Assembly (NCBI GenBank): GCA_019828565.1
Contig: JAHDYR010000012.1
Coordinates: forward strand, 186,001 to 250,000
Direction of reading: 5' to 3'
Length of the DNA stretch: 64,000 bases
Origin: Carpediemonas membranifera BICM
Lineage: Eukaryota > Protista > Fornicata
Part shown: positions 11,940 through 64,000 of the stretch, one piece after another
How the letters are laid out: each line of letters starts with the position of its first letter
Position numbering within the stretch: the first letter of the stretch is position 1
Made by a program: the position numbers and the translations under genes
Notes under the pieces: generated by a model
Database searches by the model: none
What the model was told of the DNA's origin: nothing
The model's input: only the letters and a program-made list of their open reading frames with translations

Positions 11940-12866
11940 CTAGGCCTTCTTCTTGGGCTTCTCGGGTTCAAACCCGGGCAGGCCCTCTATAAACGCCGCG
12001 TGCTCCTCCCACGGCATGCCGTCGATGCTCTCCACCGCCTCACCCGTGACACCGTCGACGGCCCCGGCCCCGAGCATGGCCGCGAGAACGGCGACCTGGC
12101 CCTTCACCGCCAGCGACGCGGGCACATCGGGGCCCTTCTTAGCGTTGAGTCGGCGGGTGTGGATGGCGTGGAGGCCCATGGCAATAGCGTAGCAGGCCCA
12201 GTTCGACACCGCGCCCAGGATCAGCGTGTCAGAGGGGGTTGCGCAGGCGATGGTCGCCCCGTTCTCGATGTAGCTCGTCGCCATCCCGAGGAGCTGCCCA
12301 AACCCGAGCTCGTTGCCGCCGTCGCCGACAGAGACAGTCGTCACGCCCTTAGCCCTGAAGATCGGGTCGGGCGGGGGCGTGTGCCACTCTGTGATGTCCT
12401 GGCCCCGCATGGACCGCGCCGTGCCGTCGTTGGCCTGACCCGGCGTCTCGACGGAGAGGACGGCGTCGAACTTTCCTCTGCATGCTGTGTCGATGAGGCT
12501 GTCAGTGATCTCGACTGTCTCCACGGCTGCCCCGGGACATAATGCAAGCATAGCCTTGATGGCGGCGTCGACGACGGGGAAATTGTGGCTCGAGGCCGCG
12601 ACGGTGACCTCGGCGCCAAGAGCATGAAGTGCCTCGGCCACAGGCGCAACGCCAAGGGGCCCATCGGTCTCACATGCACCTGCTTTGGACACGTAGAAGC
12701 CAGTAAGGATCAGGACGCGCTTGGCCTGCGAGAGGACGCCGACACCAGCGGAGAGCTCTCCACGGACGGCGGGGAAGAGCGAATCCATACCCCGGGTGCC
12801 CGGTTTGGACATAAGATATGTTTCAATCGCCTGTATCTGCTCGTGAACGGTGGTCGCTGAGCTCAT
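11940..12866 (-). CDS. DUF4392 / D-glutamate cyclase-like protein
   Basis: Motifs ILTGF..ETDGPLG, VGDGGNELGFG, GAVSNW and GAVDGVTG..IDG. Confidence 0.8.
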   Translation of the reverse strand: MSSATTVHEQIQAIETYLMSKPGTRGMDSLFPAVRGELSAGVGVLSQAKRVLILTGFYVSKAGACETDGPLGVAPVAEALHALGAEVTVAASSHNFPVVDAAIKAMLALCPGAAVETVEITDSLIDTACRGKFDAVLSVETPGQANDGTARSMRGQDITEWHTPPPDPIFRAKGVTTVSVGDGGNELGFGQLLGMATSYIENGATIACATPSDTLILGAVSNWACYAIAMGLHAIHTRRLNAKKGPDVPASLAVKGQVAVLAAMLGAGAVDGVTGEAVESIDGMPWEEHAAFIEGLPGFEPEKPKKKA

Positions 12867-21981: not shown

Positions 21982-22437
21982 CGGAGATCTGGCTCGTGAA
22001 AGGAAAGTGCAGAATAAGGTCACACCCACTGATGCATTCAAATCGACTGGGTGAGGTTCCGCACGAGTTACGCACTCTATGCTGAAGATGAGGTCAAGCC
22101 GAAGACCCTCTTCAAGTGCATCGACGCGAAAGTGAGAACAAGTATCAAGGACGCATACCAGGGCTCTGGAGGACGACGAAAGATTTATACTGCGCAACAC
22201 TGCCCTGTCTCCCTCCTACTCACGTCTTAAGTCGGTAGGGAGATCGTCTAACGTCGATGCGAGCATGCCTGTTCGAAAGCGAGCTAAAGCAACAACGCCA
22301 TCAGTGTTCAGAATCACCAACACAAGGTTCATTCCGGTTGAAAACCCGCCTGTTACGCAGAACTCCCATGCCTCTTCGTCCGACCCTTTGCCGACCAGCA
22401 TCACCAATCAACCACGCCAGGAACTTTACAACCCCCC

Positions 22438-39473: not shown

Positions 39474-39822
39474 TTCTTCACGACGCAGATTAAAGCATCG
39501 CATTTTTGGGTCAAAAGCACAGCGATCCTTGCGCGCTCATACAGCCCAGCTACACTAAAGATGCTGCTACTTCCCCAATACGCATCACTGCCCAAGTCCG
39601 CTATCGATCACCCCAAACCCAAGACCTTTTATTCCACCTGGGAAAACTGTGCTGGCAATGATAGGATAAGATGGGAAAACGTGCTAAAGTCAATTAATCG
39701 CCCCATATGTGGCATGAAGCTAGTTTCGTCCACCTCCGCGTCCGGGCGGAGTGGCTGGTGCGTGGGGGACCGACGCGCCTCTGCCTCGTCACCTCGTTGC
39801 AGGTGCGCTGGCGTTGCGTTCG

Positions 39823-40294
39823 CACATCGAGAGGTCGGTTGATCTGGCGATCGGCAGGTCCGAGGGCTTTGTTCCGGGCAGTGGGCCGACGTATGCTGTG
39901 TAAACGGGGTGCGATACATACAAACAGGTGGATACAGTGTCCTTGGTGCCAGTGTAAAAGCCGACGCAACTCGGCGGGTGCGCAAGCGACGATTTGTGCT
40001 GTGGCGCGGCGTGCTTGCCATCATTGACCGTGGTCGGCATGTTTTCGCGCATATTCGCCATACTGGGAATCGACGGGATCGACGGAAGCCCGCGGTTGTT
40101 CAGCATCTCGTGGTTCTAGCTGAAGCGCTGTACTCGGAGTCGAGTCGGCCGCAGTTTAACGCGTTTAGCTCGAAACGGCGCGCGGGGCAACTTCCAGGGC
40201 CCGCCTACCCACGCTTACAGCGCCACTTCCGCCCCAATATTCTCCCGGCCCGCATTCAAATCAGGGCTGCGTGTCCGATCTGGAGATCAGGGTC
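39823..40294. repeat. 472-bp direct repeat, copy 1 (copy 2 at 42932-43403)
   Basis: CACATCGAGAGG...GGAGATCAGGGTC is essentially identical in both copies; the only difference seen is GGCAAC vs GGCGGC. Offset 3109 bp. Confidence 0.97.
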
Positions 40295-40380
40295 GAATCC
40301 TGTGACCGAATGATCCCATGCATCATAATCGCACGACAGATACTTTAGAGCTTACTATTAGTACAATCAATACTACATGG

Positions 40381-42519: not shown

Positions 42520-42931
42520 TTCGGACAAAGACCGACGCTGAGGTGATGCTAGAAATTGAGAGCGTCAAATTCTTCAGGGCCCGAGCTCCACTCGACCCTG
42601 GAACGGTCACAGCAGGCGTACAGCAGTGCTTACTGCCAGTCTCTCTCGTCGCAAAACTTGACCGCTGCAACTTACACCGACAGTTATCAGGGCCTTTGGA
42701 CCGTGGCCATCAGTCATGCAATACTGCTGATGCCGGGGAGTGATGCTTTATATCGTTGATACCCGGGACGCCACCCACTGCCGCGTCTGCTCGGAGTCCG
42801 CCATAGGGTGCAAGGGATGTTAGCAGGCTGTCAACCCAAGCTCAGCGGAGAAGAAGCAGCCAAGGGAGAGTTTACTGATACGATAGTGTGCCGAATGCCG
42901 TATGGATAATAATCAGCGTGGGTGATGCGTT

Positions 42932-43403
42932 CACATCGAGAGGTCGGTTGATCTGGCGATCGGCAGGTCCGAGGGCTTTGTTCCGGGCAGTGGGCCGACG
43001 TATGCTGTGTAAACGGGGTGCGATACATACAAACAGGTGGATACAGTGTCCTTGGTGCCAGTGTAAAAGCCGACGCAACTCGGCGGGTGCGCAAGCGACG
43101 ATTTGTGCTGTGGCGCGGCGTGCTTGCCATCATTGACCGTGGTCGGCATGTTTTCGCGCATATTCGCCATACTGGGAATCGACGGGATCGACGGAAGCCC
43201 GCGGTTGTTCAGCATCTCGTGGTTCTAGCTGAAGCGCTGTACTCGGAGTCGAGTCGGCCGCAGTTTAACGCGTTTAGCTCGAAACGGCGCGCGGGGCGGC
43301 TTCCAGGGCCCGCCTACCCACGCTTACAGCGCCACTTCCGCCCCAATATTCTCCCGGCCCGCATTCAAATCAGGGCTGCGTGTCCGATCTGGAGATCAGG
43401 GTC
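42932..43403. repeat. 472-bp direct repeat, copy 2
   Basis: Matches 39823-40294. Confidence 0.97.
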
Positions 43404-43454
43404 AAATCTGCAATGCTCACATTTCTGAAAACATAAAATCATGCATTTTACTGC

Positions 43455-44003: not shown

Positions 44004-44401
44004 GAGAGTGGTCTGTACGCGTAGTTCGCAGGCCGGGTTCGCATGTCTTGTTCGCATGGGGTAAAGTGCGCTTGTGCGGCGTGTCATTGGTGTCGAATGA
44101 CATGGGCGGAAAAAGGATGACGCGGTTTCCCAGAGGAGAAGCAAAGGACAATGGCTGGTACTAGAGAGTTTGTACGATTCATGGATGACTTTGAGGCATC
44201 GTTTAGGCGAGTACGAGAGGACTATGTAACGAAAAGACGCCAACACGTCGTTGAGCAGGTCGTGGAGACGACCGCGAGATAATATGGAATAAAGAGACGA
44301 TAGCGTATCAAATTAGAGCAAAATGGCTGAACACACGTTGATTCAACCGTGATTCTCGGCGACGACGGAGCGAACTTGGACACAGTCGCAGCGACCCTTC
44401 A

Positions 44402-44572
44402 CAAAACACTCAAGGCTGCTTTTGGTCCCCGCCCGCCCAAGAAGGCGTACAACCACACCGCCCAACAGGACATCTCGTTCTGCCTGAGGCAGGGCTACTC
44501 GGCCGTTGACTACTAAGCACCCCACCCAACCCCTTCCTTACCCTTTACGTGAGTTGGCTCATAAATGGAACA
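44402..44572. repeat. Dispersed 171-bp repeat, copy 2
   Basis: Matches 564-734. Confidence 0.95.
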
Positions 44573-44682
44573 TTCAAGGGCATCAAAGTGCTCAGACGAT
44601 GTGAAGTGGACCCCGCAGAATTGCCCCCAGCTACCACTGCCACAGCTCAGCACGGTCAACGTCTATCTATTTACATGGCTAT

Positions 44683-51881: not shown

Positions 51882-53696
51882 TCACTCGTCATCAGTCATA
51901 CCGTCATACTCGAACGCCTGCCCGATCGCCCCCAGGATCCGCATCACACGCTTGTCCTTGGGCGCCGGTCCTGCCATATTCTGCACCTTACCCATCGGTG
52001 AGGGTGACAGAGCAGGATCACCGGCCGGAGCTTGGTTGCTGCTGTTAGCCCTGGGAATGAGCCTGGCACGGGGCATTCTCATGGGCAGCGGCGTCGGGAC
52101 CCGCGGGGGGAGGCCGAGGGACTGCTGTATGGCGGTCACCATGTCTACCTGCTTCTTGTATATCGACATGATCTGGAGATTCAGTAAGGCTGCTGGGTCG
52201 TTATATGAGATCATCTTATGGACCCCGAACACCACCAGGGCGGTGAACCCGACCCACCGGATGGCGTCGGCCGGGTTGACGCCCAGGCCGGTCGACTGTG
52301 CTGGGGGAGTAACGCGTGTCATGGCAAAGCGGTCCACCACCAGCACTGCCAGCAAGCCCATTAGCAGCACAATCCGGCAGTCCTTGAGTCGACGCGTGGC
52401 CGTCACCAGATAGATCGCCGTGGCCGCGATGACGTATGATAACAGCGTCCTCACATGCCCAACCTCCCCTAGTACCCGCCTCGTCAGCAACACGAGGTGC
52501 TCGACCCGTCCCAGGACCGTGTGCTGGAAGTCATCCAGCATCTCCCGCTGACTCTCGAGTCGGGCTTGGGTGTCCTCGGCCAGGCCGTTGAGCTGCGTCA
52601 GGGATATGAAGGCGCGGCTGAACTCCTCGTGCTGCCGCGCAGCGAGGGCTGAGAGGCCGTCTAGCGCCTGTGTCTGGCCGTCGAGCAGGGTCTGCTGAGC
52701 CTCAGTCAGGCCCGCCAACACCGCCTGGGCGTCGGCAATGGCACTTGAAACCGCATGGATGCTGGTTGTTAGCGCCTCTTCGGCCGCCTCGATGCCGTGT
52801 TCCAGGACCTTGTGCTGCTTAGCCTGCTCGGCGTGGTCCTCGGCCGCCTCTGTCGAGAGCTGGGTGAGGACCTTCAGACTGGCCTCCAGTGGGACCAGAG
52901 AGTCCACCAGTGCGGCCTGGGCATTCGCCAGAGCGTCGACTCTGGACGAGGTGAGGTTGACTGACGTCAGGGTCTGGCTGTTGATGGACCGCAGCACGCG
53001 ATGCGACTCGGTCAGGCCCCCCACGAAGTCAGCAATGCGGGCACTCATGTCACTGAGGTCGTTCAGCCTGTCCTGGGACCTGCTGAATGCGTCTGTCTGC
53101 TTGGCATCGAGCTCCTCGATGCTGTCTCCGACCGAGGTGACCGAGGAAGCAAGGGTGGCTACGGACGCCGCCTGGTCTCGAACCGAGATGGACAGCCTGC
53201 TATGGTCGGCATGGAGCTGCGCCAGGGTGAACACAGTGTCGTTCGACGCGTCGTATAGCCTATTGATCGTTTTCTCCGCCTCATCCTGGAAATCCTTCTG
53301 ACTGAGGAAGAAACAGAGGTCGTCCAGGTGGAGGAAGAACGAAGTGTACGTGTCGAAGGCGATGGGAAGCGCGGACATGCGCTGGGTGCACCGGGCGATG
53401 TTCTCGGACCTCTTGCAAGGAAACGTGTCCAGGCCGCTCCGTTCGAGGTGGCAGTTGGCAAGCTCAAAGGCAAGGCGCTGCTGATCATGGTCCTTCATGT
53501 GTTTGCAGCCCTTTCCCTTCGTCAGGGTGCGGAAGACGCGCTTGTAGCATGGGCTCATGACGCTCTGCTCCTCCATCTCCTCAACGAGCGATTCTCCTGA
53601 GGATAGGAGGGTGTTCGCAGCCTCGATGTCCATCTCATAGGCATGGATGGCTTGTGCCAATACCAGTATGGCCAGGAAGGTGAGAAGAGCCTTCAT
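51882..53696 (-). CDS. GEX1: GEX1/KAR5/Brambleberry nuclear-fusion protein
   Basis: Signal peptide, Cys-rich domain (CY...C...RLAFELANCHL..SG...C...C...YTSFF..LCFFL), coiled coil and three C-terminal TM helices. Confidence 0.88.
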   Translation of the reverse strand: MKALLTFLAILVLAQAIHAYEMDIEAANTLLSSGESLVEEMEEQSVMSPCYKRVFRTLTKGKGCKHMKDHDQQRLAFELANCHLERSGLDTFPCKRSENIARCTQRMSALPIAFDTYTSFFLHLDDLCFFLSQKDFQDEAEKTINRLYDASNDTVFTLAQLHADHSRLSISVRDQAASVATLASSVTSVGDSIEELDAKQTDAFSRSQDRLNDLSDMSARIADFVGGLTESHRVLRSINSQTLTSVNLTSSRVDALANAQAALVDSLVPLEASLKVLTQLSTEAAEDHAEQAKQHKVLEHGIEAAEEALTTSIHAVSSAIADAQAVLAGLTEAQQTLLDGQTQALDGLSALAARQHEEFSRAFISLTQLNGLAEDTQARLESQREMLDDFQHTVLGRVEHLVLLTRRVLGEVGHVRTLLSYVIAATAIYLVTATRRLKDCRIVLLMGLLAVLVVDRFAMTRVTPPAQSTGLGVNPADAIRWVGFTALVVFGVHKMISYNDPAALLNLQIMSIYKKQVDMVTAIQQSLGLPPRVPTPLPMRMPRARLIPRANSSNQAPAGDPALSPSPMGKVQNMAGPAPKDKRVMRILGAIGQAFEYDGMTDDE

Positions 53697-53904
53697 GTGT
53701 GTTCAAAACTGACGAAATTCTCGGGGCCAGAAGATGCGCGTTTATGATAGGGTCCAAAGGAACCGACGTAGACCATAACAAAGTGACTTCAGGACGCATG
53801 TTGACTACACAGCGATGACGAGGACCCATAACGGCCTGGGACGAATGCGGGATTGGGATGATGCACTGAGGCATGTCCAGAATACGACGATAGTAGCCAG
53901 CTGC

Positions 53905-54201
53905 TCAGCCTTCATTCGTCGTCGAAAGCGGCAGGTTCAGCAACAGGCTCAGCAACTCCTCGCCCTTGGAGTGCTTTTGGCTACGAATGATCTCAGCGTA
54001 GTACTGGAGGGCGCTGGAATCAGCCATCCTCTCATCATTCATCTTCTTACGCTCAGAAACATCATCCTCTACCTCTTCGCTCACATATTGATGCTTGGAG
54101 ACAAAAATGGCTTCCTTGATGACTCTATCTCGCAATAGAGGGTCAATATTCGGAGAAATAGACTGAGCAAGCTCTCTAAGATGCTCTATATGCGACATCA
54201 C
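53905..54201 (-). CDS. Small hypothetical protein
   Basis: 98-aa protein-like ORF between genes; start uncertain. Confidence 0.35.
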   Translation of the reverse strand: MMSHIEHLRELAQSISPNIDPLLRDRVIKEAIFVSKHQYVSEEVEDDVSERKKMNDERMADSSALQYYAEIIRSQKHSKGEELLSLLLNLPLSTTNEG

Positions 54202-54244
54202 GCTGTGGTCGTCTTGTATAGTCGGACTCCGGTTAAACTGCGAT

Positions 54245-55042
54245 TTACTTTGTCGCCCCGATAAATCCTGCTACGATCAATAAAATCACCGATACGCCCA
54301 TGAGCACCCCTACTACCAGCGTCAACTTCCCCAGCCCGCGTCCCGCGCCGTGTCTGAGCTCCCTCGCCCTCTCGTAGAGGACCCCGATGCTGTCGTCGAT
54401 CTGGGCGAGCTCGTCGTTCCTGGCGTTGATATCGCCCTCCTGTGCATGGAGCTCGTCGCTAATATCATTCGCCACCTCTTTCAGCACGCCGAGGGAGGCT
54501 GCGATGACTCGTATCCTGTCCTCAATGACCTGCTCCTGCATGGGCAGCGGGAGTAGGACCTCGGGCAGCTCGGCCATATCCGCCTTGGGCCTCTTCCTGA
54601 CGCTAGGGATGTTCAGCTTGATCCTGCCCTCGGGGGACTCCGCCTTGGGCACTCGCCGATCGAATGACTTGAGATCCTCTAGTAGGCCCTGGATCGTCTC
54701 ACCAATAGCCGCGCTGTGCATTCCCGCGAGTCTGTCCGCCTTGCTGCTCAGCTCCGCCATCTTCTCCCGGATGGCGTGCGCCTTTTGGACGAGATCATCG
54801 GACATGCCGGCGGCTGCAAGCTCGTTTCGTTCCTTGATTTCCTTGTGGAGCGCTATAGCATCTTTGTGGAACTGAGCTAGCTGCGCATTCTCTCTCGTAA
54901 CGATGTGGTTCAGCGCTGGGGAGAGAACGGCTGATTTTGGGGCCGCACGGTGCGTATGGTCCGGCTCAAGAGCATCCTCTGCAATGGAAATGATCCTTTC
55001 CAGCCTGTGAAGCTGCCTGTCTTTCTCTGAATCGAAGAACAT
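54245..55042 (-). CDS. Qc-SNARE (Syp7/Syntaxin-8-like)
   Basis: N-terminal helical bundle, SNARE motif (I...LGVLKEVANDISDELHAQ) and a C-terminal TM anchor. Confidence 0.75.
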   Translation of the reverse strand: MFFDSEKDRQLHRLERIISIAEDALEPDHTHRAAPKSAVLSPALNHIVTRENAQLAQFHKDAIALHKEIKERNELAAAGMSDDLVQKAHAIREKMAELSSKADRLAGMHSAAIGETIQGLLEDLKSFDRRVPKAESPEGRIKLNIPSVRKRPKADMAELPEVLLPLPMQEQVIEDRIRVIAASLGVLKEVANDISDELHAQEGDINARNDELAQIDDSIGVLYERARELRHGAGRGLGKLTLVVGVLMGVSVILLIVAGFIGATK

Positions 55043-55167
55043 GCCTCAATGTCGTGCCGTGACATCCTTACAGCGACTTGTGGAAGATTGCATGAATTAC
55101 GTGCCATATAAATGCATTCGACCAGCCAAAACCACTCCCTCTGTTGCCACAAATACTCTTTTACACA

Positions 55168-56301
55168 CTACATGGCCATGATGAGCTCGGCAACCTCGCC
55201 CTCGCCCAACTTCCACTGGACAAGGACGCCATCCAGACCCGCCGTCGACACCACGCCGCCGTCGACAAGGCGGATGGAGGGCACCGTGTTGCGGTGTACC
55301 GTCTGCACGCCCTTGCTCTTCATCGCGGACTCGGCCTTGCCGCTCGACGCCGCGGCCGCCTCGAACTTGGCAAAGGCAGCGCTGCGGGGCTTCTTAGGGC
55401 CACCGCCGATCTCTGCGTTGCCCTTCTTGGGGTCGAGGGACTTCCGCATGGCCCAGCCCTCGGCGTCCTTGGTGAAGAGAAGCGGCTCGGCGTTGTAGCC
55501 GGTGGCGATGGCCGCGGTCTCGTTAATATACACGGCTGCGAGCATAGCCTCGCTGGTGAGAGTGACTGTGGCCACGGGGCAGGGCTGGTCGGCCGAGAGG
55601 GTGACGAAGCGGACCTTGGCGTCGCCCGTGACGATCATCAGCTCATCGCCACTGGGGCTGAAGGCGATGTCCTGAATCCAGGCACCGTCCGTGACGTCGA
55701 GCTCGATAAGGGGCTGGGGGAAGCGGATCGGGGGACCGAAGCCGTACACAGCCTCGGTGGGACGCTTGTCGACTCCCTTCATGACCGCGGCGAACAGCAG
55801 GACCTTGCCGTTCATCCCACCGCACGCGCAGACGATGCCGTTAGGGTGCCAGGCGGCCGCGGTGACGGACTCGGCCATTGATGGGTGGTCCGTGCGGCGG
55901 GACACCCACCACTCGGTCGAGCGGGTGTCACGGTGGCAGATGCAGACACAGTGCTGGCCAGAGGTCACAACAAACTTAGTGCCGTTCGGGGACCAGGCTA
56001 CGGAGAGGGCGGCGCGGTTGATGGGCAGGATGACAAGCTCGGGGGACCAGATGCCGTCAGCAAACGTCCAGACGTAGGCACTGCGATCGTGAGAGCATGA
56101 AACAATGTTGTTCGTCTCATGGCACCAGTCAATAGCGCTAACATGCTGGTCGTGCTTCAGAAGCTTGTGCTTTTCGACAGGACCCTTTTCTGTAATCTCG
56201 AAGATCACAATCTCGTTGTTGTTGGGGCAGATGGCAACTTGAGTGTGATCAGCGTTCCAGGCATGCGCTGAAATGTGCTCAGCAAGCTTGTTCGTCTGCA
56301 T
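55168..56301 (-). CDS. ARPC1: Arp2/3 complex subunit 1 (p41)
   Basis: Motifs HAWNAD.TQVAICPNN, HD..V.AIDW, IVSCSHDR.AYVW, P.LVIL.INRAA..V.WSP and WWVS. Confidence 0.93.
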   Translation of the reverse strand: MQTNKLAEHISAHAWNADHTQVAICPNNNEIVIFEITEKGPVEKHKLLKHDQHVSAIDWCHETNNIVSCSHDRSAYVWTFADGIWSPELVILPINRAALSVAWSPNGTKFVVTSGQHCVCICHRDTRSTEWWVSRRTDHPSMAESVTAAAWHPNGIVCACGGMNGKVLLFAAVMKGVDKRPTEAVYGFGPPIRFPQPLIELDVTDGAWIQDIAFSPSGDELMIVTGDAKVRFVTLSADQPCPVATVTLTSEAMLAAVYINETAAIATGYNAEPLLFTKDAEGWAMRKSLDPKKGNAEIGGGPKKPRSAAFAKFEAAAASSGKAESAMKSKGVQTVHRNTVPSIRLVDGGVVSTAGLDGVLVQWKLGEGEVAELIMAM

Positions 56302-56401
56302 AGTGATGATGAAAATGGAGTGAGGAAATTCATTTACGCGTATACATGCCTCGCCATATACCAACGGTCCAGGCTAATACCAGCGCTCAAATGGTCTAGG
56401 G

Positions 56402-57304
56402 CTAGGAGCTGTCAGCGTATTGGTACCCATCATCCACGCCGTTGTGGAGATGCAGGCGTTGTGCTGAGATTCTGCTGAACGCATTCAATGACGCTGGGGC
56501 AGCCTGTGTCTTGAAAGGGGTTACGGCCGAGCATACTGTATAATACTGCTGTCTCTCGACCATTCCGTGGAACTGGATGTGGGACACGAGCATCTGCATG
56601 GCGCTCTTGTTGTCCACACCACGAGGGACACTGACGTCGGCATTACGCATGCTCGGTTGGATGAAATCGTCATGCGCCGGCTTGACTGTCAGTCTGTACT
56701 GCGTCAGCACGCTCAGGATTGTGCGGCCCCTCTCGGTGATGTCCCGCTCAATCCTGCGGGCAAGTCTCTCGTCCGCATCTGTGTCGACAAAGATCTTGAG
56801 GTCAAACAGCTTGCGGAGCTCATCGTGGAGCAGCACGAAGATCCCCTCCACGAGGACGATGTCTACCGGCTGCACGGTAGTGTAGTCGACCCGCGAGGAC
56901 GTCACGTAGTCATAAACAGGAACCTGCACTGCCTCACCGCGGCGGAGGCCCTGGACAACCTCGATGAGCGCGTTGAAGTCGAACATCTCGGGGTGGTCGA
57001 AGTTGCAGGCCTCCGGGTTGTGCCGCTGCTCCTCAGTAAGGTCGTGGTAGAAGCTGTCGAGGGCAATCACGGTGGCCGTGCGGTTTGGCATCATGCCCTC
57101 GATTGCTTTGCAGCATGAGGTCTTTCCAGACGCGCTGCCGCCTGCAACACCGATGATGAGCGGACCAGCATGCCTCGAAATGTGGCCGCCGCGGAATTTT
57201 TGCAGCAGATCGCTGTTCATTGACGGTGGTGATAGTGCTTGCTCCAGGGATTCACATAAGCTGGACATTGGTTGTTTAAAATTTTGCGACGTGTCACCGC
57301 TCAT
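56402..57304 (-). CDS. UCK: Uridine-cytidine kinase
   Basis: Motifs IGVAGGSASGKT, DSFY, NFDHP, VEGI, RRIERDITERGR and VKPA...FI.P. Confidence 0.93.
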   Translation of the reverse strand: MSGDTSQNFKQPMSSLCESLEQALSPPSMNSDLLQKFRGGHISRHAGPLIIGVAGGSASGKTSCCKAIEGMMPNRTATVIALDSFYHDLTEEQRHNPEACNFDHPEMFDFNALIEVVQGLRRGEAVQVPVYDYVTSSRVDYTTVQPVDIVLVEGIFVLLHDELRKLFDLKIFVDTDADERLARRIERDITERGRTILSVLTQYRLTVKPAHDDFIQPSMRNADVSVPRGVDNKSAMQMLVSHIQFHGMVERQQYYTVCSAVTPFKTQAAPASLNAFSRISAQRLHLHNGVDDGYQYADSS

Positions 57305-57493
57305 AATCAAAACGAATCTCAGATCCGTGACAGCCGGTGTTGCTGGACGATGCCGCCCACTACAGCAGTCCCGGTGAGAGTAGCTTGAGTCGAGTCACAG
57401 TTCCCCCCAAAGCTGAAGAAACTGACCAGGGGCAGCACGAACTGCCTTTTTTAAGTGCGAGACGCCAGACACCAGTAAATCGACGAATTTACT

Positions 57494-58756
57494 CTATAAA
57501 AACGTACTCCGTAAATTGCTCGAGTCGAATACCTGCATCCCTAACGCCCCGAGCATGTCGTCGTCTGTCGGGCTGGGGATCGGCGAGTCGAGCTCCGCGG
57601 GCACCTCCGCCGGACCCAGCGAGGGGGAGGCCTCCCACCTCCGCTCGACCTTCTTGTGGGTCTTGGGCAGTGTAAGGTCGAGCTCGTCAGCGAGGGCCTG
57701 GGCTTCCGCCTCGAGCCGGGTGACGGTCTCGACGAGGCGATGGAAGTATCGGATGTACTCGGAGATCTGGAAACTCACGGCCTCCAGGCGGTAGTTGCGG
57801 CCGAGCTTGATCGTCGCCCGCTTGGACTGCTCCGTCGTCTCGGCCAGCAGCCAGGCGCCCTTGAACGGCCCCAGCGCGCTGCTCAGTCGCCGCCTCTCGA
57901 ACTTGGTCTTCTGCACGAGTTCCTCTCGGGTCAGGGGCCCGTTTCTCAGTGCGTGCACGACTCTGCATATGATTGTCTCGACGGACTGGTTGTGTCGGAT
58001 GGACCTGTCCTCCATGGCGGATTCCAGGGGGAAGATGCAATCGCCCAGGTACCCCAGCTGCTCGGAGATCGGCTTGAACATGCCAGTCTGCTCGTGCATC
58101 GCACGGACGGCATCGGCGAAGGCCTTGTCGTCGGCCCGGTACCCCGTCTGGACCATGTTCAGCAGGGTGAAGTCGGGCGGTGTGATGTCGTCCGGGTTGA
58201 CCAATGTGTGGGTCAGCAGATGTTGGTGGAGGAAGCAGAGTGGGTCCGGCCGGACCCGCGGGCCCATAGAGAGGACGAACTCGGCCGCGGGATGGACTAG
58301 GGGAACCACGGGGGCGTCAGTCCGGACTGTGAGCTTGGACGGACCCCTGGGCGTGTGGGCCGGCGGGTCGGGGCTCGGTTCCATGTCTACATCCTCCTCC
58401 TCGGGGATCGGCATGCCGGGGGTCTCGCTGCGGCCGTAGATGGAAGGGGAAGGCACCCATGTCCCTATCTGTGGGTCGAAGCCGAGCGGCTGGTCGTAAT
58501 CGAGGAAACTGAGGTCCGAAAAGGCCGGTGAGGCGGGGAAGACGTCGAGCTCGGCGAAAGCGCGCATCGTCTCGGGGTCAATGTCGCTATGTGCTGAGAG
58601 AACGCCGATTCCTGTTCCAGCGGCGTACTGGACGTCGAGGGGCGGCGGGCGGAAGGGCGAGGACGGATCCTGCTGCGGGGGGAAGCCGAACAGATGGCCT
58701 TCATCGCTTACCGGATTCTTTTGGCGATTATTTGCGCGCTCATGATGCGCATCCAT
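57494..58756 (-). CDS. Hypothetical protein with a divergent E2F/DP-like winged helix plus coiled coil
   Basis: RHNQSV..I...V..L..GPL...L...T.FERRRL...L..F.G..LL parallels the E2F DNA-binding domain and is followed by a heptad repeat. Confidence 0.45.
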   Translation of the reverse strand: MDAHHERANNRQKNPVSDEGHLFGFPPQQDPSSPFRPPPLDVQYAAGTGIGVLSAHSDIDPETMRAFAELDVFPASPAFSDLSFLDYDQPLGFDPQIGTWVPSPSIYGRSETPGMPIPEEEDVDMEPSPDPPAHTPRGPSKLTVRTDAPVVPLVHPAAEFVLSMGPRVRPDPLCFLHQHLLTHTLVNPDDITPPDFTLLNMVQTGYRADDKAFADAVRAMHEQTGMFKPISEQLGYLGDCIFPLESAMEDRSIRHNQSVETIICRVVHALRNGPLTREELVQKTKFERRRLSSALGPFKGAWLLAETTEQSKRATIKLGRNYRLEAVSFQISEYIRYFHRLVETVTRLEAEAQALADELDLTLPKTHKKVERRWEASPSLGPAEVPAELDSPIPSPTDDDMLGALGMQVFDSSNLRSTFL

Positions 58757-58944
58757 TACAGTTTCATTGCTCTGGCTGGGTTCGCAAGCGATGCCTGCGA
58801 ATGAAGTCCGACTGCTGCGAGTCCGGGAGTCGGTGTCAGTGCGTGCCAGCAAGTGAGCAGAGAACACCAGGCTGCATCACCAATGTTGGTCGGACTTCCT
58901 GCTGCATGGACACTCCAACCACGGGCAAACTAAACTCTTTAAAC

Positions 58945-60154
58945 TTAAATGCGGGACTTGGCCACGAGCGCCGCCTCATCATCGAGCTCAGTGTCATCAG
59001 CCATGTCGTCCGCCATCTTCTCCTCCTCGACCACACCCGACCGTTCCAGATTCGCCTCCAAGAACATGGACAACAGTTGGATCGAGATGTTCTTTGGCGG
59101 CCAGCCCGACCAGAAGCCAAGGTGCCCTCCGCTGGGGAACAGGATGGTCTGTACATTCACTGGGAACGACCCGAGCAGCTGGTGGTCGGACTTGCTGAGC
59201 AGCGGGTCGTTGGCGGCCTGCATGATCAGCAGGGGGACGTGCACGAGCTCGTCTTTCCAGTGCCGGGCATTCAGCTCCCGGTAGTACTCGTGCGCGCGGG
59301 ATCTAGGGTATCCAAACGTCGGGGCGATGACCTCCTCGACGAACTCTCGGGCGCCGACGCACTTGCGGATGATGTCTGGGGTCACGCCACACTCCTCGAG
59401 GCCGATGTTCTCGCCGTGTTCGACAGCGTCTAACAGGGGGCCGCGGGCTGCGTCGAGCATGCCGCCCCTGTACATCTTGGACAGGCCGTTGTCAAGGGCG
59501 TCGACCGTTTTCTCGAGCTCAAGGGGGGTGGAGGTAGCTACGCCGACCTTAACCGCGGGGTGTGGGTCCCTGAGGTAGCGGAGGACGATCACACCGCCGA
59601 GGCTCCAGCCGCAGACGGCGATGGGGGCTCCTGGGAACTTCTCGACGACGTGCTCGACCACCTCCTTGAGATCCGCGTCACACATCGCACTGAAGGACTT
59701 CGCCCTCGTCTGCGGAGTCGACACGCCGCGGCCGTCCACGCCAATGGCCCGCCAGCCATGTCGGTGGGCCATGTGCATCGATGCGATCATGTACTGCGAC
59801 GTCGAGTCACCAGAAAGGCCGTGGATCAGCAGCACGACGGGAGCATCTACTGGGAGTGGGTCTGCGTCTGTGAGGGGCGTGCGGAAGTAGCAGAGCTGTG
59901 TGAGCGTGTCTTGGGGGACAAACGGAGTTGTACTCGCCGTCGGAGAGCTGGAACGGGAAGCGGTGGAATCTAGTAAGGTTAGGATTCTTGCCAACGCGTT
60001 TGTTGTGAAAAATCACAGGGACAATCGTCTCCAGGTGGGCGCGGGCCTTCTTAACGGGTAGGAGGCGGAAGGGCGTCTTCATTTCGAGTGGAGACTTGAG
60101 GTGCTTGCCACTAGCAAAGAAATGCTTTGCTCCGTTAGCAATAAGACTTTCCAT
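58945..60154 (-). CDS. Alpha/beta hydrolase (ABHD1-3/YheT-like); 28-nt intron 59896-59923; may have further 5' exon(s) up to about 60400
   Basis: HGLSGDS, GWSLGG nucleophile elbow, AANDPL and GGHLGF; frames joined by GTTTGT...CTCACACAG. Confidence 0.88.
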
Positions 60155-60405
60155 GTCAAAGGATGGAAGTGTTACAGCGAGGGAGCATGCAGGTTAAGCG
60201 AAGATCGATCCGATTTCGAGATATAAAACGGCCCTGATGCTGGCACGAGTGCAGGGCCAGCCTACCAATGCCCGTGACTGTTCAGGTTCATTGGGCGGGT
60301 GGTGCAGGGTCGCCTTATCCTGCCCGACAGTCGACGGACTACTGAAAGCTACTGAAAGCAAAGCTCGATTTACTACCAGCAGCACGATACATACCCCCAC
60401 CGCAC

Positions 60406-61848
60406 TCAGCCCTCTTCGAGCTGGAACACGACCACCTGCTCCAACCGCCCCGCCGCCACGACAAACAGCTGGACCTCGCCGGTCACCTCGTGCTGGGGTC
60501 GGCCCACCTTCCCGAACCGGATCGCGACTGAGTAACTGCGGCGGCCGTCCGCTGAGAGGTCCCCGGGGGCCGCGGCGACGGCCTCCATCACGCGGCAGTT
60601 CGACCGCACGTACCAGATCTTGGCAGGATCAGTCGGCTCAGATTCTTGCCAGGTGAATCTTTTCTTGATCTGGTTGGAGCGTGATAGTTTGACATTGAAT
60701 CGCCGGCATGTGACATTTTCGGGCAGCTCGGCGTGACAGACCAACATGTAAGGGTACAGCAGGCTCCACTCACCGTCAATGTTCAAAGTCACCAGCTCGT
60801 ATGACAACCCGGCCGTGACAGGCGTGTATTTGACAATCACACCGTACATCTCGTCATCCTCGACCGCAAATTCTGAGTCACCCTCGACTTCACAGCAGTG
60901 GGAAGTCGTCTTGATCCAGACGGTCCCAGGGTCGCCCCGATGCCGGTACATCAGCTGGGCACCGACCATGCAGCCGACCGTGGTGTGGAGGTCGACCCGG
61001 CGGGCCGCCCGGAACTCGACGTGAATCAGTTGAAGGGGAAGTAGGCCGCGATACACAATGATCCAGGAGTCGAGGGAGTTTGTAGTCGAGTTGAATCTCT
61101 TGTGAAGAGTCACGTCGAGGTCGACCGTCTTGGCGTCCACGGCTGTCAAAAAGGCGTCAACGTCGCCATATCCCTGGGTCACTGTGACATGGACATCCTC
61201 ATGGGCGTACTGTTCGTTGGGCCCAGCTCTCACCAGGGACTGCCCCGAGTAGGTTGGGGAGATCACGTCGGCCCTGCCCGACTCCAGGTCGAGTCGGACA
61301 GTCATCCTCGGGTAGGGCACTGGGTCCACGGGTGTCGACGTCGGCACCCAGAACACGGGGCTGAACGAGGCGACCGGTGGGGCTGGGGAGACCTCGACGG
61401 GGATGGCGAGGTTGTCCTGGCCCGATTGGACCCGGACGGTGAGGGTGAACGACTCGGCCTTGGAAAAGATGGAGAGCTTCAAACTCTTCACACTGAGGTA
61501 TATGTTGAGCTGAGAGCCGCTGTCAAGGGCGAAGGAGGGAGAGTGGGAGTCGCCCTCAAAGATGGACTCCAGCACGAAGGGGGGCGCCAGGCCTGTATGT
61601 GTCCGATATGTTTCGCTATCGGTGATGAAATCTGCCTCTATCCCCTCGAGGGGATCAATAGTGAGGACAAACTCGCGGTCTTCCCGATAGGGGTTCTGGA
61701 AAGGGATGTACGTCATCGTTGGATAGCCTAAAAGAAGCTGCGCACGTTTCTTATTCGCTTCAAGCTTGTCTGGCCTGTTGAGAAAGTCTATAGAGGCCAT
61801 TGACCTGCGCCACTGTCTTAAAGTGCGGTGGCCATGGTGGAGACACAC
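60406..61848 (-). CDS. Nephrocystin-4 (NPHP4)-like protein, C-terminal Ig-like region; 5' end uncertain
   Basis: FQNPY...F.L.ID...FITDSE.YR and terminal KRFTW...SN...IRF...V.LFV resemble NPHP4 by eye. Confidence 0.55.
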   Translation of the reverse strand: MCLHHGHRTLRQWRRSMASIDFLNRPDKLEANKKRAQLLLGYPTMTYIPFQNPYREDREFVLTIDPLEGIEADFITDSETYRTHTGLAPPFVLESIFEGDSHSPSFALDSGSQLNIYLSVKSLKLSIFSKAESFTLTVRVQSGQDNLAIPVEVSPAPPVASFSPVFWVPTSTPVDPVPYPRMTVRLDLESGRADVISPTYSGQSLVRAGPNEQYAHEDVHVTVTQGYGDVDAFLTAVDAKTVDLDVTLHKRFNSTTNSLDSWIIVYRGLLPLQLIHVEFRAARRVDLHTTVGCMVGAQLMYRHRGDPGTVWIKTTSHCCEVEGDSEFAVEDDEMYGVIVKYTPVTAGLSYELVTLNIDGEWSLLYPYMLVCHAELPENVTCRRFNVKLSRSNQIKKRFTWQESEPTDPAKIWYVRSNCRVMEAVAAAPGDLSADGRRSYSVAIRFGKVGRPQHEVTGEVQLFVVAAGRLEQVVVFQLEEG

Positions 61849-62455
61849 TGCCGTTGGGGTAGAAGTAGTTCTGCCGTTGAGGTACTGCTTGTAAACATCC
61901 GTGTTGCTGGGCTTGGAACATCACCACACGATTTTCAATCAGTTGATTGGCCCAGCGTGGCACGCTCACCCGTGTCGGCAACTGCGAGTGTGTGTTACTG
62001 CGAGCAGACAATGGGCTGAACTAGGAGTGCGCCTGTGTCTCACTCCAGTCTTGATCCGCGGCATTGGTGCTCACCGTCGCGCCTTGCTCGAAAATACCGT
62101 ATTTCGGTTTTCCCGCAACATTCAAGGCATCGCCATCATCAATCGCATCATAGGGTCCGGAGCAGCCGAGCGGCATTCGTGCTGGAAAGATATGCAGTCA
62201 TCACCACACAATCAACCGTGACAAATGATGTCTAAATCTACTTCTTATCTGTATACGCATCCAACAGCGCTATTCCGGGGTTCTCTCCTTTTTATATCAT
62301 TCTAACTGCTTAGAAAGCTCCAATGCTGTTGACAGAGACGTCAACCATCTGAACAGAGGAAGTAGAAGCGACCGCGTCGCAGCTGTAGGTTTCATAGGTG
62401 TCCTTGCACCCGCCATTGTTGTTGCCCATGACTTTTCGGACAGAAATTGCTTTGC

Positions 62456-62485
62456 TGTGCTGCGCAGGATTAGAATTGTTGAGTC
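62456..62485. repeat. 30-bp direct repeat, copy downstream of the Fanzor ORF
   Basis: TGTGCTGCGCAGGATTAGAATTGTTGAGTC matches 63932-63961 at 29/30. Confidence 0.95.
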
Positions 62486-62600
62486 CAAAACACACAGTGA
62501 TCCAAGCAGCATCAGGATCGCAGTGTGGTTCATCATACTCCATCAATCGTGCGCTGCATATCACGCGCGCTGCAGCGCGTGCTTGCTCAACTTAGCAAGT
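62486..62600 (-). ncRNA. Candidate Fanzor omega-RNA scaffold
   Basis: Three consecutive hairpins immediately 3' of the Fanzor stop: 62582-87/62594-99; 62562-68/62575-81; 62491-95/62523-27 with 62499-503/62515-19. This is where omega-RNAs are known to lie. Confidence 0.5.
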
Positions 62601-63478
62601 TAATGATAGCGAGGAAGAGCACCTCTCTGGGAGTCGTAGTGGAAAGGAGATTGCTCTATCTGATCTGAAGTTGCATCGAAGGTGCACCAAAGGATGTTCT
62701 CGCTGGCGCTCTTATCTCGGTGAGAGAGATTGAGAAGTATGTCTCTCTGCTCGGGATGCCGACGTAGCCGTTCAACGCGCCATGGAGCTCCCTCGCACGC
62801 GGGATTCTGGCAGAGCATGGTGCGGTGTGTGTGCACCACACGTCTGAAGTGTGCTTTGCAGTGTGGGCACACGATGGAAGTGCGGAATTCGGAGACCATG
62901 TTGACACTCACGACGACGTTGTGCCGGAGCATTATGCCAGGAAGTGCTCGAGCAAAGTGGCGGTACGGAGCACAGGAGGGAGTGCCGGCGGAACCGAACA
63001 GTGCAGCCCCATACGCGACTTCGAGGTGAATGGGCTCCGGGGGGCGCCCGCCGAGATCATCCAGGAGTTGACGTCCAGCCCGAGCGAAGTGCTTCTGGCG
63101 CAGACGGTGATTGGCAAAAGTCGCACGGCGGAAACACTTTCTCATCCCCTCGTTGATGATCTGAACGATGTTCTTCTTCTCATGGACAAACCTAATCGAC
63201 TGTTTGAGAGCCTCTAGACTTGTCGTTTTGAACGATGCTGCGCTCATATTCACGCGGAAAGAGGGGGTGGCAGTGTAGCCACACTTAGCGAGTACGCCAG
63301 ATACACTCTGCCCGTCTGGGCGGCGGATCGTGTAGCCGCCCAGCGACCGAGCACCAGGGTCGAAGCCCATGAGAGCTTGAATGTCCGGGGCAGGAGTAGC
63401 CTCAGCGTCATCCTGACCGAGCCCGCTTGTTATTGCTACCCTTTTTGTACGTGGGCCGGTCAGCCACCCGACCGCCAC
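62600..63478 (-). CDS. Fanzor (eukaryotic TnpB-family RuvC nuclease), Fanzor1-like, apparently N-terminally truncated
   Basis: RuvC-I GFDPG; SFKT.S...RR.TF...RQK helical region; VAYG with an alternative glutamate in VSEFRTS; Zn finger CPHC...CQNPAC; RuvC-III HRDKSASENI. Confidence 0.9.
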   Translation of the reverse strand: MAVGWLTGPRTKRVAITSGLGQDDAEATPAPDIQALMGFDPGARSLGGYTIRRPDGQSVSGVLAKCGYTATPSFRVNMSAASFKTTSLEALKQSIRFVHEKKNIVQIINEGMRKCFRRATFANHRLRQKHFARAGRQLLDDLGGRPPEPIHLEVAYGAALFGSAGTPSCAPYRHFARALPGIMLRHNVVVSVNMVSEFRTSIVCPHCKAHFRRVVHTHRTMLCQNPACEGAPWRVERLRRHPEQRDILLNLSHRDKSASENILWCTFDATSDQIEQSPFHYDSQRGALPRYH

Positions 63479-63720
63479 GGTATTTCTCGCGACCCACCCA
63501 AACCGTCACGTTACGTTAATCTCGCCAATGGCCTTGTTAACGGAAGCCTTCACCGTGTATATCTTGGAAGGCGGAGTCTATTGAGCTGCCTGCATCGATC
63601 ATTTCTTTTCAGGGTTCATCAGCTAGCAGCATCCCTCAAAACACAAGAAACCAGCATCATACAGCACAAAGCGTCTTTACTACTAGTTACAACCGCTTTC
63701 CACCACTAGTGTCTCTCACA

Positions 63721-63904
63721 ACAGACGAAGATGACGAAGACGACGACGACATGAGCTTCAGACGCCGGCAATGGACGACAGATGAGCGCGTAACAGACGA
63801 GCACAGACGCGAAAGAAGACCGCAGCGTTCGACACAGACGATGGACGACGCATCTTTTCGTGCAGACCGACGACTGAAAGCACGAAAGCCCGATGGTACA
63901 GACG
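63721..63904. repeat. Iterated ACAGACG motif array
   Basis: Perfect ACAGACG at 63721, 63793, 63803, 63834 and 63898; variants at 63759, 63778 and 63863; ATGGACGAC twice (63771, 63841). All in the same orientation. Confidence 0.75.
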
Positions 63905-63931
63905 AGGGCTGAAGTGGGTGAGTGGAGGTAG

Positions 63932-63961
63932 TGTGCCGCGCAGGATTAGAATTGTTGAGTC
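63932..63961. repeat. 30-bp direct repeat, copy upstream of the Fanzor ORF
   Basis: TGTGCCGCGCAGGATTAGAATTGTTGAGTC matches 62456-62485. Confidence 0.95.
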
Positions 63962-64000
63962 TAAATCCTCTGGAGTTCATCCCAGGGGGGTCGACAGCCC

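Follow-up and report, generated by a model that had tools for sequence, protein, structure and literature searches.

The minus-strand open reading frame at 62600–63478 of the window, the whole stretch of 64,000 nucleotides of Carpediemonas membranifera DNA analysed here, belongs to a damaged subfamily-A copy of Fanzor1, a pseudogene that is dead at this locus, although an intact member of the family exists elsewhere in the genome. The reading of the locus as an internally deleted, non-coding subfamily-A copy of a C. membranifera family of Fanzor1 transposons, taken together with the mechanism proposed below, is considered likely. The carrier element, which an earlier note on this DNA had missed, is the more unusual and novel part.

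C. membranifera is a free-living protist, a fornicate belonging to Metamonada, so that the earlier note's guess of a probable metamonad host was correct. That note knew of no characterised metamonad example, and no paper reporting a Fanzor in Carpediemonas or in any metamonad was found, an unremarked database entry being possible. None is mentioned in the text of Saito 2023 or Jiang 2023, nor in the supplements of Saito 2023, and the genome paper of C. membranifera never mentions transposons. The family would extend the range of Fanzor1 to Metamonada by a lineage invisible to standard sequence searches, which implies that eukaryotic RNA-guided nucleases are undercounted in present surveys. An intact, intron-free candidate of 642 aa and dozens of natural guide flanks make direct testing possible, and the role of Fanzors for their transposons becomes testable in a carrier that fits no reported Fanzor host superfamily. 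Moreover, NHEJ, ORC and Cdc6 are missing from the host, which is believed to rely on recombination (10.1101/2021.03.14.435266); the dynamics of its genome may therefore be influenced by some 135 loci derived from a nuclease.

The damaged copy in the window

All the motifs quoted in the earlier note (GFDPG, VAYG, VSEFRTS, CPHC/CQNPAC and HRDKSASENI) are contained in the ORF at 62600–63478, and the shifted glutamate lies exactly 40 residues past the glycine, as had been stated. The C-terminal half of Fanzor1, with RuvC-I, RuvC-II, RuvC-III and the zinc finger, is read in frame over 62600–63421 (minus strand, as are all the coding remnants described below). It holds the RuvC-I Asp of the DPG in GFDPG (63359–63361; D392 in the intact paralog), a Gly in VAYG at the canonical position of the RuvC-II Glu (63008–63010; G507), the shifted RuvC-II Glu of VSEFRTS (62888–62890; E547), placed six residues ahead of the finger, the C4 zinc finger itself (TNB; CPHC/CQNPAC, 62795–62869), and the RuvC-III Asp of the RD in HRDKS (62714–62716; D605). 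The identification of a rearranged RuvC of the Fanzor type was borne out by this motif order, by the Gly at RuvC-II and by the place of the shifted Glu.

The first methionine of the nuclease frame is found only at 63370, three codons ahead of the RuvC-I Asp. The first 19 codons of the listed ORF (63422–63478) are a wrong-frame reading of a remnant of the WED C-terminus and basic linker (63422–63513), put out of frame relative to the intact paralog by a 5-nt deletion at 63424, and the true frame starts at 63421. The GTG start of the listed ORF is an artefact of the bacterial code and is meaningless in a eukaryote. Beyond the linker lies an N-terminal remnant (63514–63595) in which, compared with the intact paralog, the start ATG has been removed by a 3-nt deletion at 63573, and in which a stop follows the upstream Met (63578–63580). 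Between the two remnants, a 931-bp deletion with its junction at 63514 has eliminated codons 29–341 of 642, which hold REC/WED sequence. The window copy is 97.2% identical to the intact paralog (locus L009).

Solved Fanzor1 structures show REC and WED to be the parts by which the TAM is recognised and the guide is held. Having lost its start codon and the whole REC/WED lobe, the window copy cannot be a working RNA-guided nuclease. Two descriptions given in the earlier note were thus upheld in part: the "Fanzor RNA-guided nuclease gene" has its motifs but no usable product, given the loss of the ATG, the 931-bp deletion and the frameshift, and the "OMEGA system" has its three catalytic residues intact but is not a working system at this locus. 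The spliced model deposited for the locus (P0010, J8273_0076) was rejected, as it passes over the zinc finger and runs out of frame. Throughout, the comparison of broken copies was made at the DNA level or in pieces, and some alignment rows are the depositor's own gene models. Internal deletions like that of the window copy are the rule among Fanzor copies, and further internally deleted B, C and A copies were observed at most 10 kb from the sampled loci (L005 16733–17418, L009 16407–17535, L003 4831–5105 and L011 9933–11576).

Contamination, a possibility that the earlier note had raised, is ruled out. Positions 52656–64000 of the window are 100% identical to the 1.87-Mb C. membranifera contig JAHDYR010000012.1, the neighbours of the copy are eukaryotic genes (WD40, uridine kinase and alpha/beta hydrolase), and the element is bounded by a target-site duplication (TSD).

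The 3′ region of the window copy is intact. The 145 nt from the stop to the element end (62456–62600, minus strand) are a candidate omega-RNA scaffold, predicted to fold (z −2.7) into a hairpin (62562–62581) and then a long stem (62458–62558) that closes at the element end. The same layout of hairpin and long stem was obtained from different sequence in subfamily C (z −2.9 and −4.5), and the fold was weaker in subfamily B (z −1.2 and −2.2). No compensatory changes in the fold were found among the copies, which are too alike, and no Rfam match to the candidate was obtained, Rfam and tRNA scans being blank. By analogy with the "ghost" loci of Spizellomyces, the window copy could at most donate omega-RNA in trans.

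Several other repeats were observed in the window. A small remnant of a subfamily-C element, from its left end and body, lies at 22184–22288, and two copies of a 485-bp intergenic repeat, 99% identical, at 39815–40299 and 42926–43408. A dispersed repeat occurs at 552–739 and 44382–44577, and positions 1–1132 are shared with a contig-end locus (L003 1874–2789 and 7318–8404) in a block that may be subtelomeric; one of these dispersed repeats ends in a short ORF tail. A separate ORF at 57494–58867 contains, by eye, an E2F/DP-like winged-helix stretch and has no Pfam match.

Probable Fanzor1 identity of the family

All 40 homologues found are hypothetical proteins of C. membranifera, 48–100% identical over the matched part. 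The genome holds about 135 Fanzor gene models, the searches having listed 138 sequences grouped in 52 clusters, of which at least one is mis-clustered; the models occupy more than 100 genomic places and form three subfamilies (A, B and C) with about 45% identity. Among 114 retrieved proteins, subfamily A accounted for 45, B for 18 and C for 37, and all RuvC and zinc-finger motifs were kept in 28 of the 114. One near full-length subfamily-A Fanzor (P0051, KAG9394045.1) is labelled "cytosine deaminase" in NCBI/UniRef, which is a mis-annotation. The homologue searches were length-limited and cover proteins near the query length. No sequence relative outside C. membranifera came from the collections searched (viral, metagenome, prokaryote, phage and plasmid) or from a search of 1.84 billion representatives with the 292-aa ORF as query, where a profile might reach further.

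The intact family members are elements of about 2.4–2.6 kb with one intron-free ORF of some 640 aa, followed by a structured 145-nt 3′ region at the terminus. Full-length copies, which the earlier note had suggested looking for elsewhere in the genome, do exist: paralog P0067 (J8273_4472) is a single uninterrupted ORF of 642 aa, and, to judge from its sequence, the OMEGA claim would hold for the family. The intact ORFs carry the Fanzor1 motif order and the D-E-D triad, which is D392/E547/D605 in P0067 and D383/E541/D606 in SpuFz1, and the Gly/Glu pair G507/E547, with a spacing of 40, compares with G500/E536 in SPu-1-1p, with a spacing of 36. In P0067, D392-P-G, E547 and C554 combine the DPG with a Glu six residues ahead of the finger; DPG together with a shifted Glu is found in fewer than 1% of TnpBs. 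The Fanzor signature of Bao and Jurka, D-x(125,275)-[TS][TS]-xx-C4 finger-x(5,50)-RD, was matched in members of A, B and C, with 157–169 aa from the D to the TS. Co-linearity with published Fanzor1s, taken from the supplement of the same authors, was followed by eye through an N-terminal YTVK-like segment and the TDG, SxKT, RRxxF, YG-F-G and RD segments; it is a reading rather than a score, clearest for the Fanzor1s of Ectocarpus viruses. A full-length size of about 600 aa or more, with an enlarged REC and WED lobe, is found in P0067 but not in the window copy.

The RuvC and finger motifs are invariant or nearly so across the three subfamilies, whose mutual identity is only about 45–55%, and the motifs are therefore not due to chance. 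Between subfamilies, dN/dS ranged from 0.14 to 0.27, with dS near saturation. Among A copies, it was mostly 0.2–0.7 (1.7 in one pair), as expected for copies decaying after insertion.

The comparison with profiles and structures proposed in the earlier note gave a mixed outcome. Searches of Pfam, NCBIfam, PHROGs, PADLOC and PDB (sequence and profile) reached no significance, the weak matches including the Pfam Cas12f1-like_TNB profile (E 0.05–1.3) and PDB profiles (E 0.12–0.45). P0067 was folded as one uninterrupted natural ORF, and its AlphaFold model was poor (pLDDT 41.5), the helical N-lobe being the best-predicted part; the full-length and domain-only models were both of low confidence (pLDDT 41), with TM-scores of at most 0.2. 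Against 350,542 PDB chains, Foldseek placed GtFz1 and SpuFz1 at ranks 1, 2, 7, 10 and 15, with E values (0.15–0.6) that are not significant. In BFVD, rank 1 was Wsv486 of WSSV (E 4.4e-5, from a low-confidence model), and the domain-only model did no better, giving only weak Cas12f-type matches. Wsv486 is a homologue of a 3.2-kb repeat of C. merolae later named Fanzor1 CMe-1A, and WSSV has one Fanzor1; accordingly, Wsv486 is most likely that protein, SWv-1.

Fanzor2/IS607 was tried and rejected because of the length of about 640 aa, the lack of a TnpB match, and the 5-bp TSD in 12 of 12 insertions, where none would be expected. On these grounds, the Fanzor1-like character seen in the earlier note was confirmed over a Fanzor2 affiliation, and the C. 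membranifera family is, by its full motif order and its weak fold matches, very probably Fanzor1.

The carrier element and its mobility

The carrier was compared over eleven loci of about 20 kb each, within some 290 kb sampled with a bias to copies having gene models. The elements are non-autonomous; they begin with TG, end with CA and encode no transposase, and their insertion is staggered by 5 bp. A 5-bp target duplication of variable sequence was found in all 12 insertions having both ends, one with a mismatch and two with an extra CA ahead of the right copy; in two other elements the left junction is lost. In the window, the right copy of the duplication (GCAAA) lies at 62451–62455 (minus strand), and the left copy falls just outside, at L008 9310–9314. 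In each subfamily, both ends carry a short unit, the two being in direct orientation; 30–41 nt are common to them and the other half is different. The right terminal unit of the window copy, 41 nt bounded by TG...CA, occupies 62456–62496 (minus strand), and its last 34 nt are directly repeated at 63932–63965 (minus strand), the shared part of the left terminal unit. Solo left units with their own duplications were observed in B (67 nt) and C (43 nt). Terminal inversions measure 3–6 bp overall, subfamily B having a perfect one of 6 bp (TGAAGT...ACTTCA). At the inner edge of the left unit there is a purine-rich tract (63911–63931, plus strand), PPT-like when read antisense to Fanzor; it is present in all three subfamilies with 17–19 purines out of 21 (background 0.008–0.0006 each).

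In subfamily A, the left unit is interrupted in seven of seven loci, always at the one site and with a copy of TTTAGA on each side. The inserted fragment, termed X, is the 3′ end of an RLE-like ORF antisense to Fanzor; in the window it occupies 63966–64000 (plus strand) and continues outside to the TG terminus at L008 9315. Its length differs at each locus (408, 137, 129, 205, 68, 111 and 193 nt). Two more gene models show X fused to subfamily A, and they were the only other occurrences in a search within a length window; none was found in viral or metagenome contigs. The TTTAGA site is altered in the right unit, which is never split by X. The longest piece (123 aa) presents, by eye, R-x-x-D, a D 14 residues later and K-x-x-Y-K at the ORF end, which we take to be the pattern of a restriction-like endonuclease; it had no HMM or PDB match, and no RT was found in the 123 aa seen. 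A Tn7-like TnsA was rejected by eye, the motif being D-x-T rather than E-x-K. The X junctions include a microhomology join in L007 and a snap-back-like piece in L011, and the last 16–17 nt of the X side resemble the subfamily-C terminus. X is not significantly younger than the element body (1.1% vs 1.9%, p=0.12).

A host motif, GCAnTTTA, ends 12 nt (11–13) from the left end of the element, forward in A and reversed in B. It is exact in 7 of 13 flanks (background 0.0009), the motif itself having been derived from these flanks. The form YGCA(C/G)TTTA is about 9-fold enriched between genes (e.g., window 61821–61829), often 20–60 nt upstream of start codons and in either orientation, and GCAnTTTA is therefore probably a promoter element of Carpediemonas. 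A 96-bp segment with a promoter-like motif inside is shared, at 94% identity, by window 61815–61910 and L001 512–604, upstream of two unrelated genes. At L004 ~12030–12062, a C-type terminus with different inner sequence (a G-run) has the host motif at the usual offset; no duplication was found for it, and it is possibly a fourth family or a partner element.

In none of the subfamilies are bases in or adjoining the TSD conserved; the one flank motif that is conserved lies 7 nt further out. Thus, no ordinary TAM can be read and simple homing to empty sites is not evident; a TAM matching the sequence adjoining the left end holds only "in some cases" for known Fanzors. Since the TSD varies here and no TAM adjoins the insertion site, the standard model of homing has either to be relaxed or to fail. 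The L002 element is a chimera with a left part from B and a right part from A, although it carries a single TSD and is placed relative to the host motif as B elements are. Recombination is frequent: subfamily-A copies are strongly mosaic, with incompatibility in 639 of 1711 informative site pairs.

The carrier was put in no transposon superfamily, since for every candidate there is a defining test that it fails or is unable to pass. Helitrons and Replitrons were rejected because of the fixed 5-bp TSD and exact ends, and canonical LTR replication because of the unequal repeats and the lack of a primer-binding site. A candidate helper is a Ty3/Gypsy-like retrotransposon at L009 230–5845, rearranged or nested, with gag knuckles, protease, RT (Pfam RVT_1, E 9e-28), RNase H, integrase and a GPY plus chromodomain-like tail. 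Other than its integrase, no DDE transposase was seen in the sampled ~290 kb.

In the proposed mechanism, intact copies would give rise to a complex of Fanzor and omega-RNA, guided by the flank to the right of the element, and the breaks would be repaired by homologous recombination, NHEJ being absent from the host (10.1101/2021.03.14.435266), by which the element would be maintained; this part is considered probable. Guided cutting with recombination repair would account for the solo units and mosaic copies, as well as for selection having been purifying between subfamilies. As for mobility, the preferred route, put forward tentatively and somewhat short of an even chance, is copying through an RNA antisense to Fanzor. 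The purine tract would prime the second strand, the short direct repeat would serve as homology for strand transfer, template switching would produce recombinants, and an LTR-type integrase, borrowed and anchored close to the promoter motif, would integrate the copy. This route was preferred because Gypsy RT and integrase are present in the genome and because it accounts for the purine tract, the chimera and the mosaicism. Against it stand the lack of a tRNA primer-binding site (no TGG site follows the other unit), the terminal units that differ in one half, and copy-specific variants not always common to both units. More doubtful is the wider notion of an OMEGA nuclease that spreads as a retroelement, with antisense RNA reverse transcribed by way of the purine tract and short direct repeats, helper-derived ends, and integration at a constant distance from a promoter factor of the host; there, the missing TAM beside the insertion site would imply a relaxed or host-assisted target rule.

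Ranked nearly as good as the retroelement route, though itself rather doubtful, is a carrier with the same Fanzor1 that moves as DNA only, as a non-autonomous cut-and-paste transposon of two MITE-like units served by a Ginger2/TDD- or IS481-like DDE enzyme, X then representing separate site-specific RLE insertions that saturate the subfamily-A left end. The perfect inversion of subfamily B and the 4–5-bp TSDs of Ginger2 speak for such a transposon, as do, on the side of X, the TTTAGA repeat bounding it in every copy, the altered site in the never-hit right unit, junctions like 5′-truncated TPRT joints, and the failure to find it apart from subfamily A. Yet inversions of 3–6 bp and no DDE transposase beyond the Gypsy integrase are a poor fit, the purine tract of all three subfamilies is left without explanation, and so is the one-TSD chimera unless it was converted in place; nearly 100% occupancy by X would also be needed (7/7 loci and two gene models), and X is not significantly younger than the body. 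An unlikely account, ranked third, modelled by analogy on U6-L1 chimeras, makes the elements passengers of non-LTR RLE retrotransposons, with TPRT starting from the 3′ tail of a partner and switching template to a Fanzor-antisense RNA, B and C having fixed partner tails. The X length peculiar to each A copy would be explained, as would the fact that the position relative to the host motif depends only on the left end (in L002 it is that of B), the likeness of the X side to the C terminus, and a promoter-like host motif placed within the outer end as an internal promoter would be. However, the exact TG...CA at both termini, the exact solo units, a far end without variable truncation among the sampled copies and the failure to find free-standing X copies argue against it.

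Two further alternatives concern the protein. It might be a TnpB/Fanzor derivative that does not cut empty sites, being an RNA-guided binder or nickase, or one whose TAM is very relaxed or host-factor-assisted, a reading fed by the flanks that lack conserved bases beside the TSD; it is held to be improbable, as three diverged subfamilies, under purifying selection, all retain the D-E-D triad and the zinc finger. That the protein is not a Fanzor at all, but prokaryotic contamination, or some unrelated nuclease or transposase in which the DPG/TS-C4/RD pattern arose by chance, would agree with the non-significant profile matches and with the lack of relatives among 1.8 billion representatives. 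It is very hard to reconcile with the complete co-linear motif set, the enrichment of Fanzors among the fold ranks of two libraries, the roughly 135 copies that have TSDs and lie on eukaryotic contigs of megabase size, and the absence of matches in phage, plasmid and prokaryote collections, and is given hardly any credence.

Comparison with known systems

TRIM and solo-LTR derivatives of Ty3-Gypsy elements have TG...CA ends, a short TSD, a purine tract inside one end and solo units, and in Ty3 and Tf1 integration is directed by host factors. The Carpediemonas elements resemble them in the TG...CA termini, 5-bp TSD, purine tract, solo units and fixed offset from a host motif. In contrast to TRIMs, their units are only 41–67 nt long and differ in one half, no tRNA primer-binding site follows, and the cargo is a Fanzor in antisense. 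The element was not classed as a TRIM, since two identical LTRs and a tRNA primer-binding site are absent and only 30–41 nt are common to the units. Site-specific non-LTR retrotransposons of the RLE clades include R2/NeSL/CRE and, in Giardia, Genie/Gil. The motif order of X at its ORF end and its variable 5′ truncation recall these elements; X differs in that the 123 aa seen have no profile match and in its apparent target, which is the end of another transposon.

Ginger2/TDD and IS481EU, the latter a DNA transposon of parabasalid metamonads with TSDs of about 4, 15 or 25 bp (PMC10045372), share the TG...CA termini. The 5-bp TSD of the Carpediemonas element fits Ginger2, with TSDs of 4–5 bp, and not IS481EU; unlike either, its inversion spans only 3–6 bp and no such transposase was seen in the ~290 kb sampled.

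With the known Fanzor1s (SpuFz1, GtFz1 and PpFz1, and the viral SWv-1/Wsv486, ESv-1 and ESvi-1), the family shares a length of about 640 aa, a helical N-terminal lobe, the TDG strand, the DPG, the Gly at the canonical RuvC-II position, the Glu six residues ahead of the C4 finger and the RD, as well as a structured non-coding region from the stop to the element end and many partial copies. It departs from them in having no detectable similarity outside the species, in its new host supergroup, and in a carrier with direct terminal repeats, a variable 5-bp TSD and no adjacent TAM-like motif, the table of Bao and Jurka holding no Fanzor family with a 5-bp TSD. Finally, the Spu-1 ghost loci of Spizellomyces punctatus (PMC10432273) are, like the window copy, non-coding derivatives that keep both ends and the omega-RNA region, a candidate one in the window copy. 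Unlike them, the window copy keeps the whole RuvC half, and the ends of the Carpediemonas elements are direct repeats where those of Spu-1 are inverted repeats of 30 nt.
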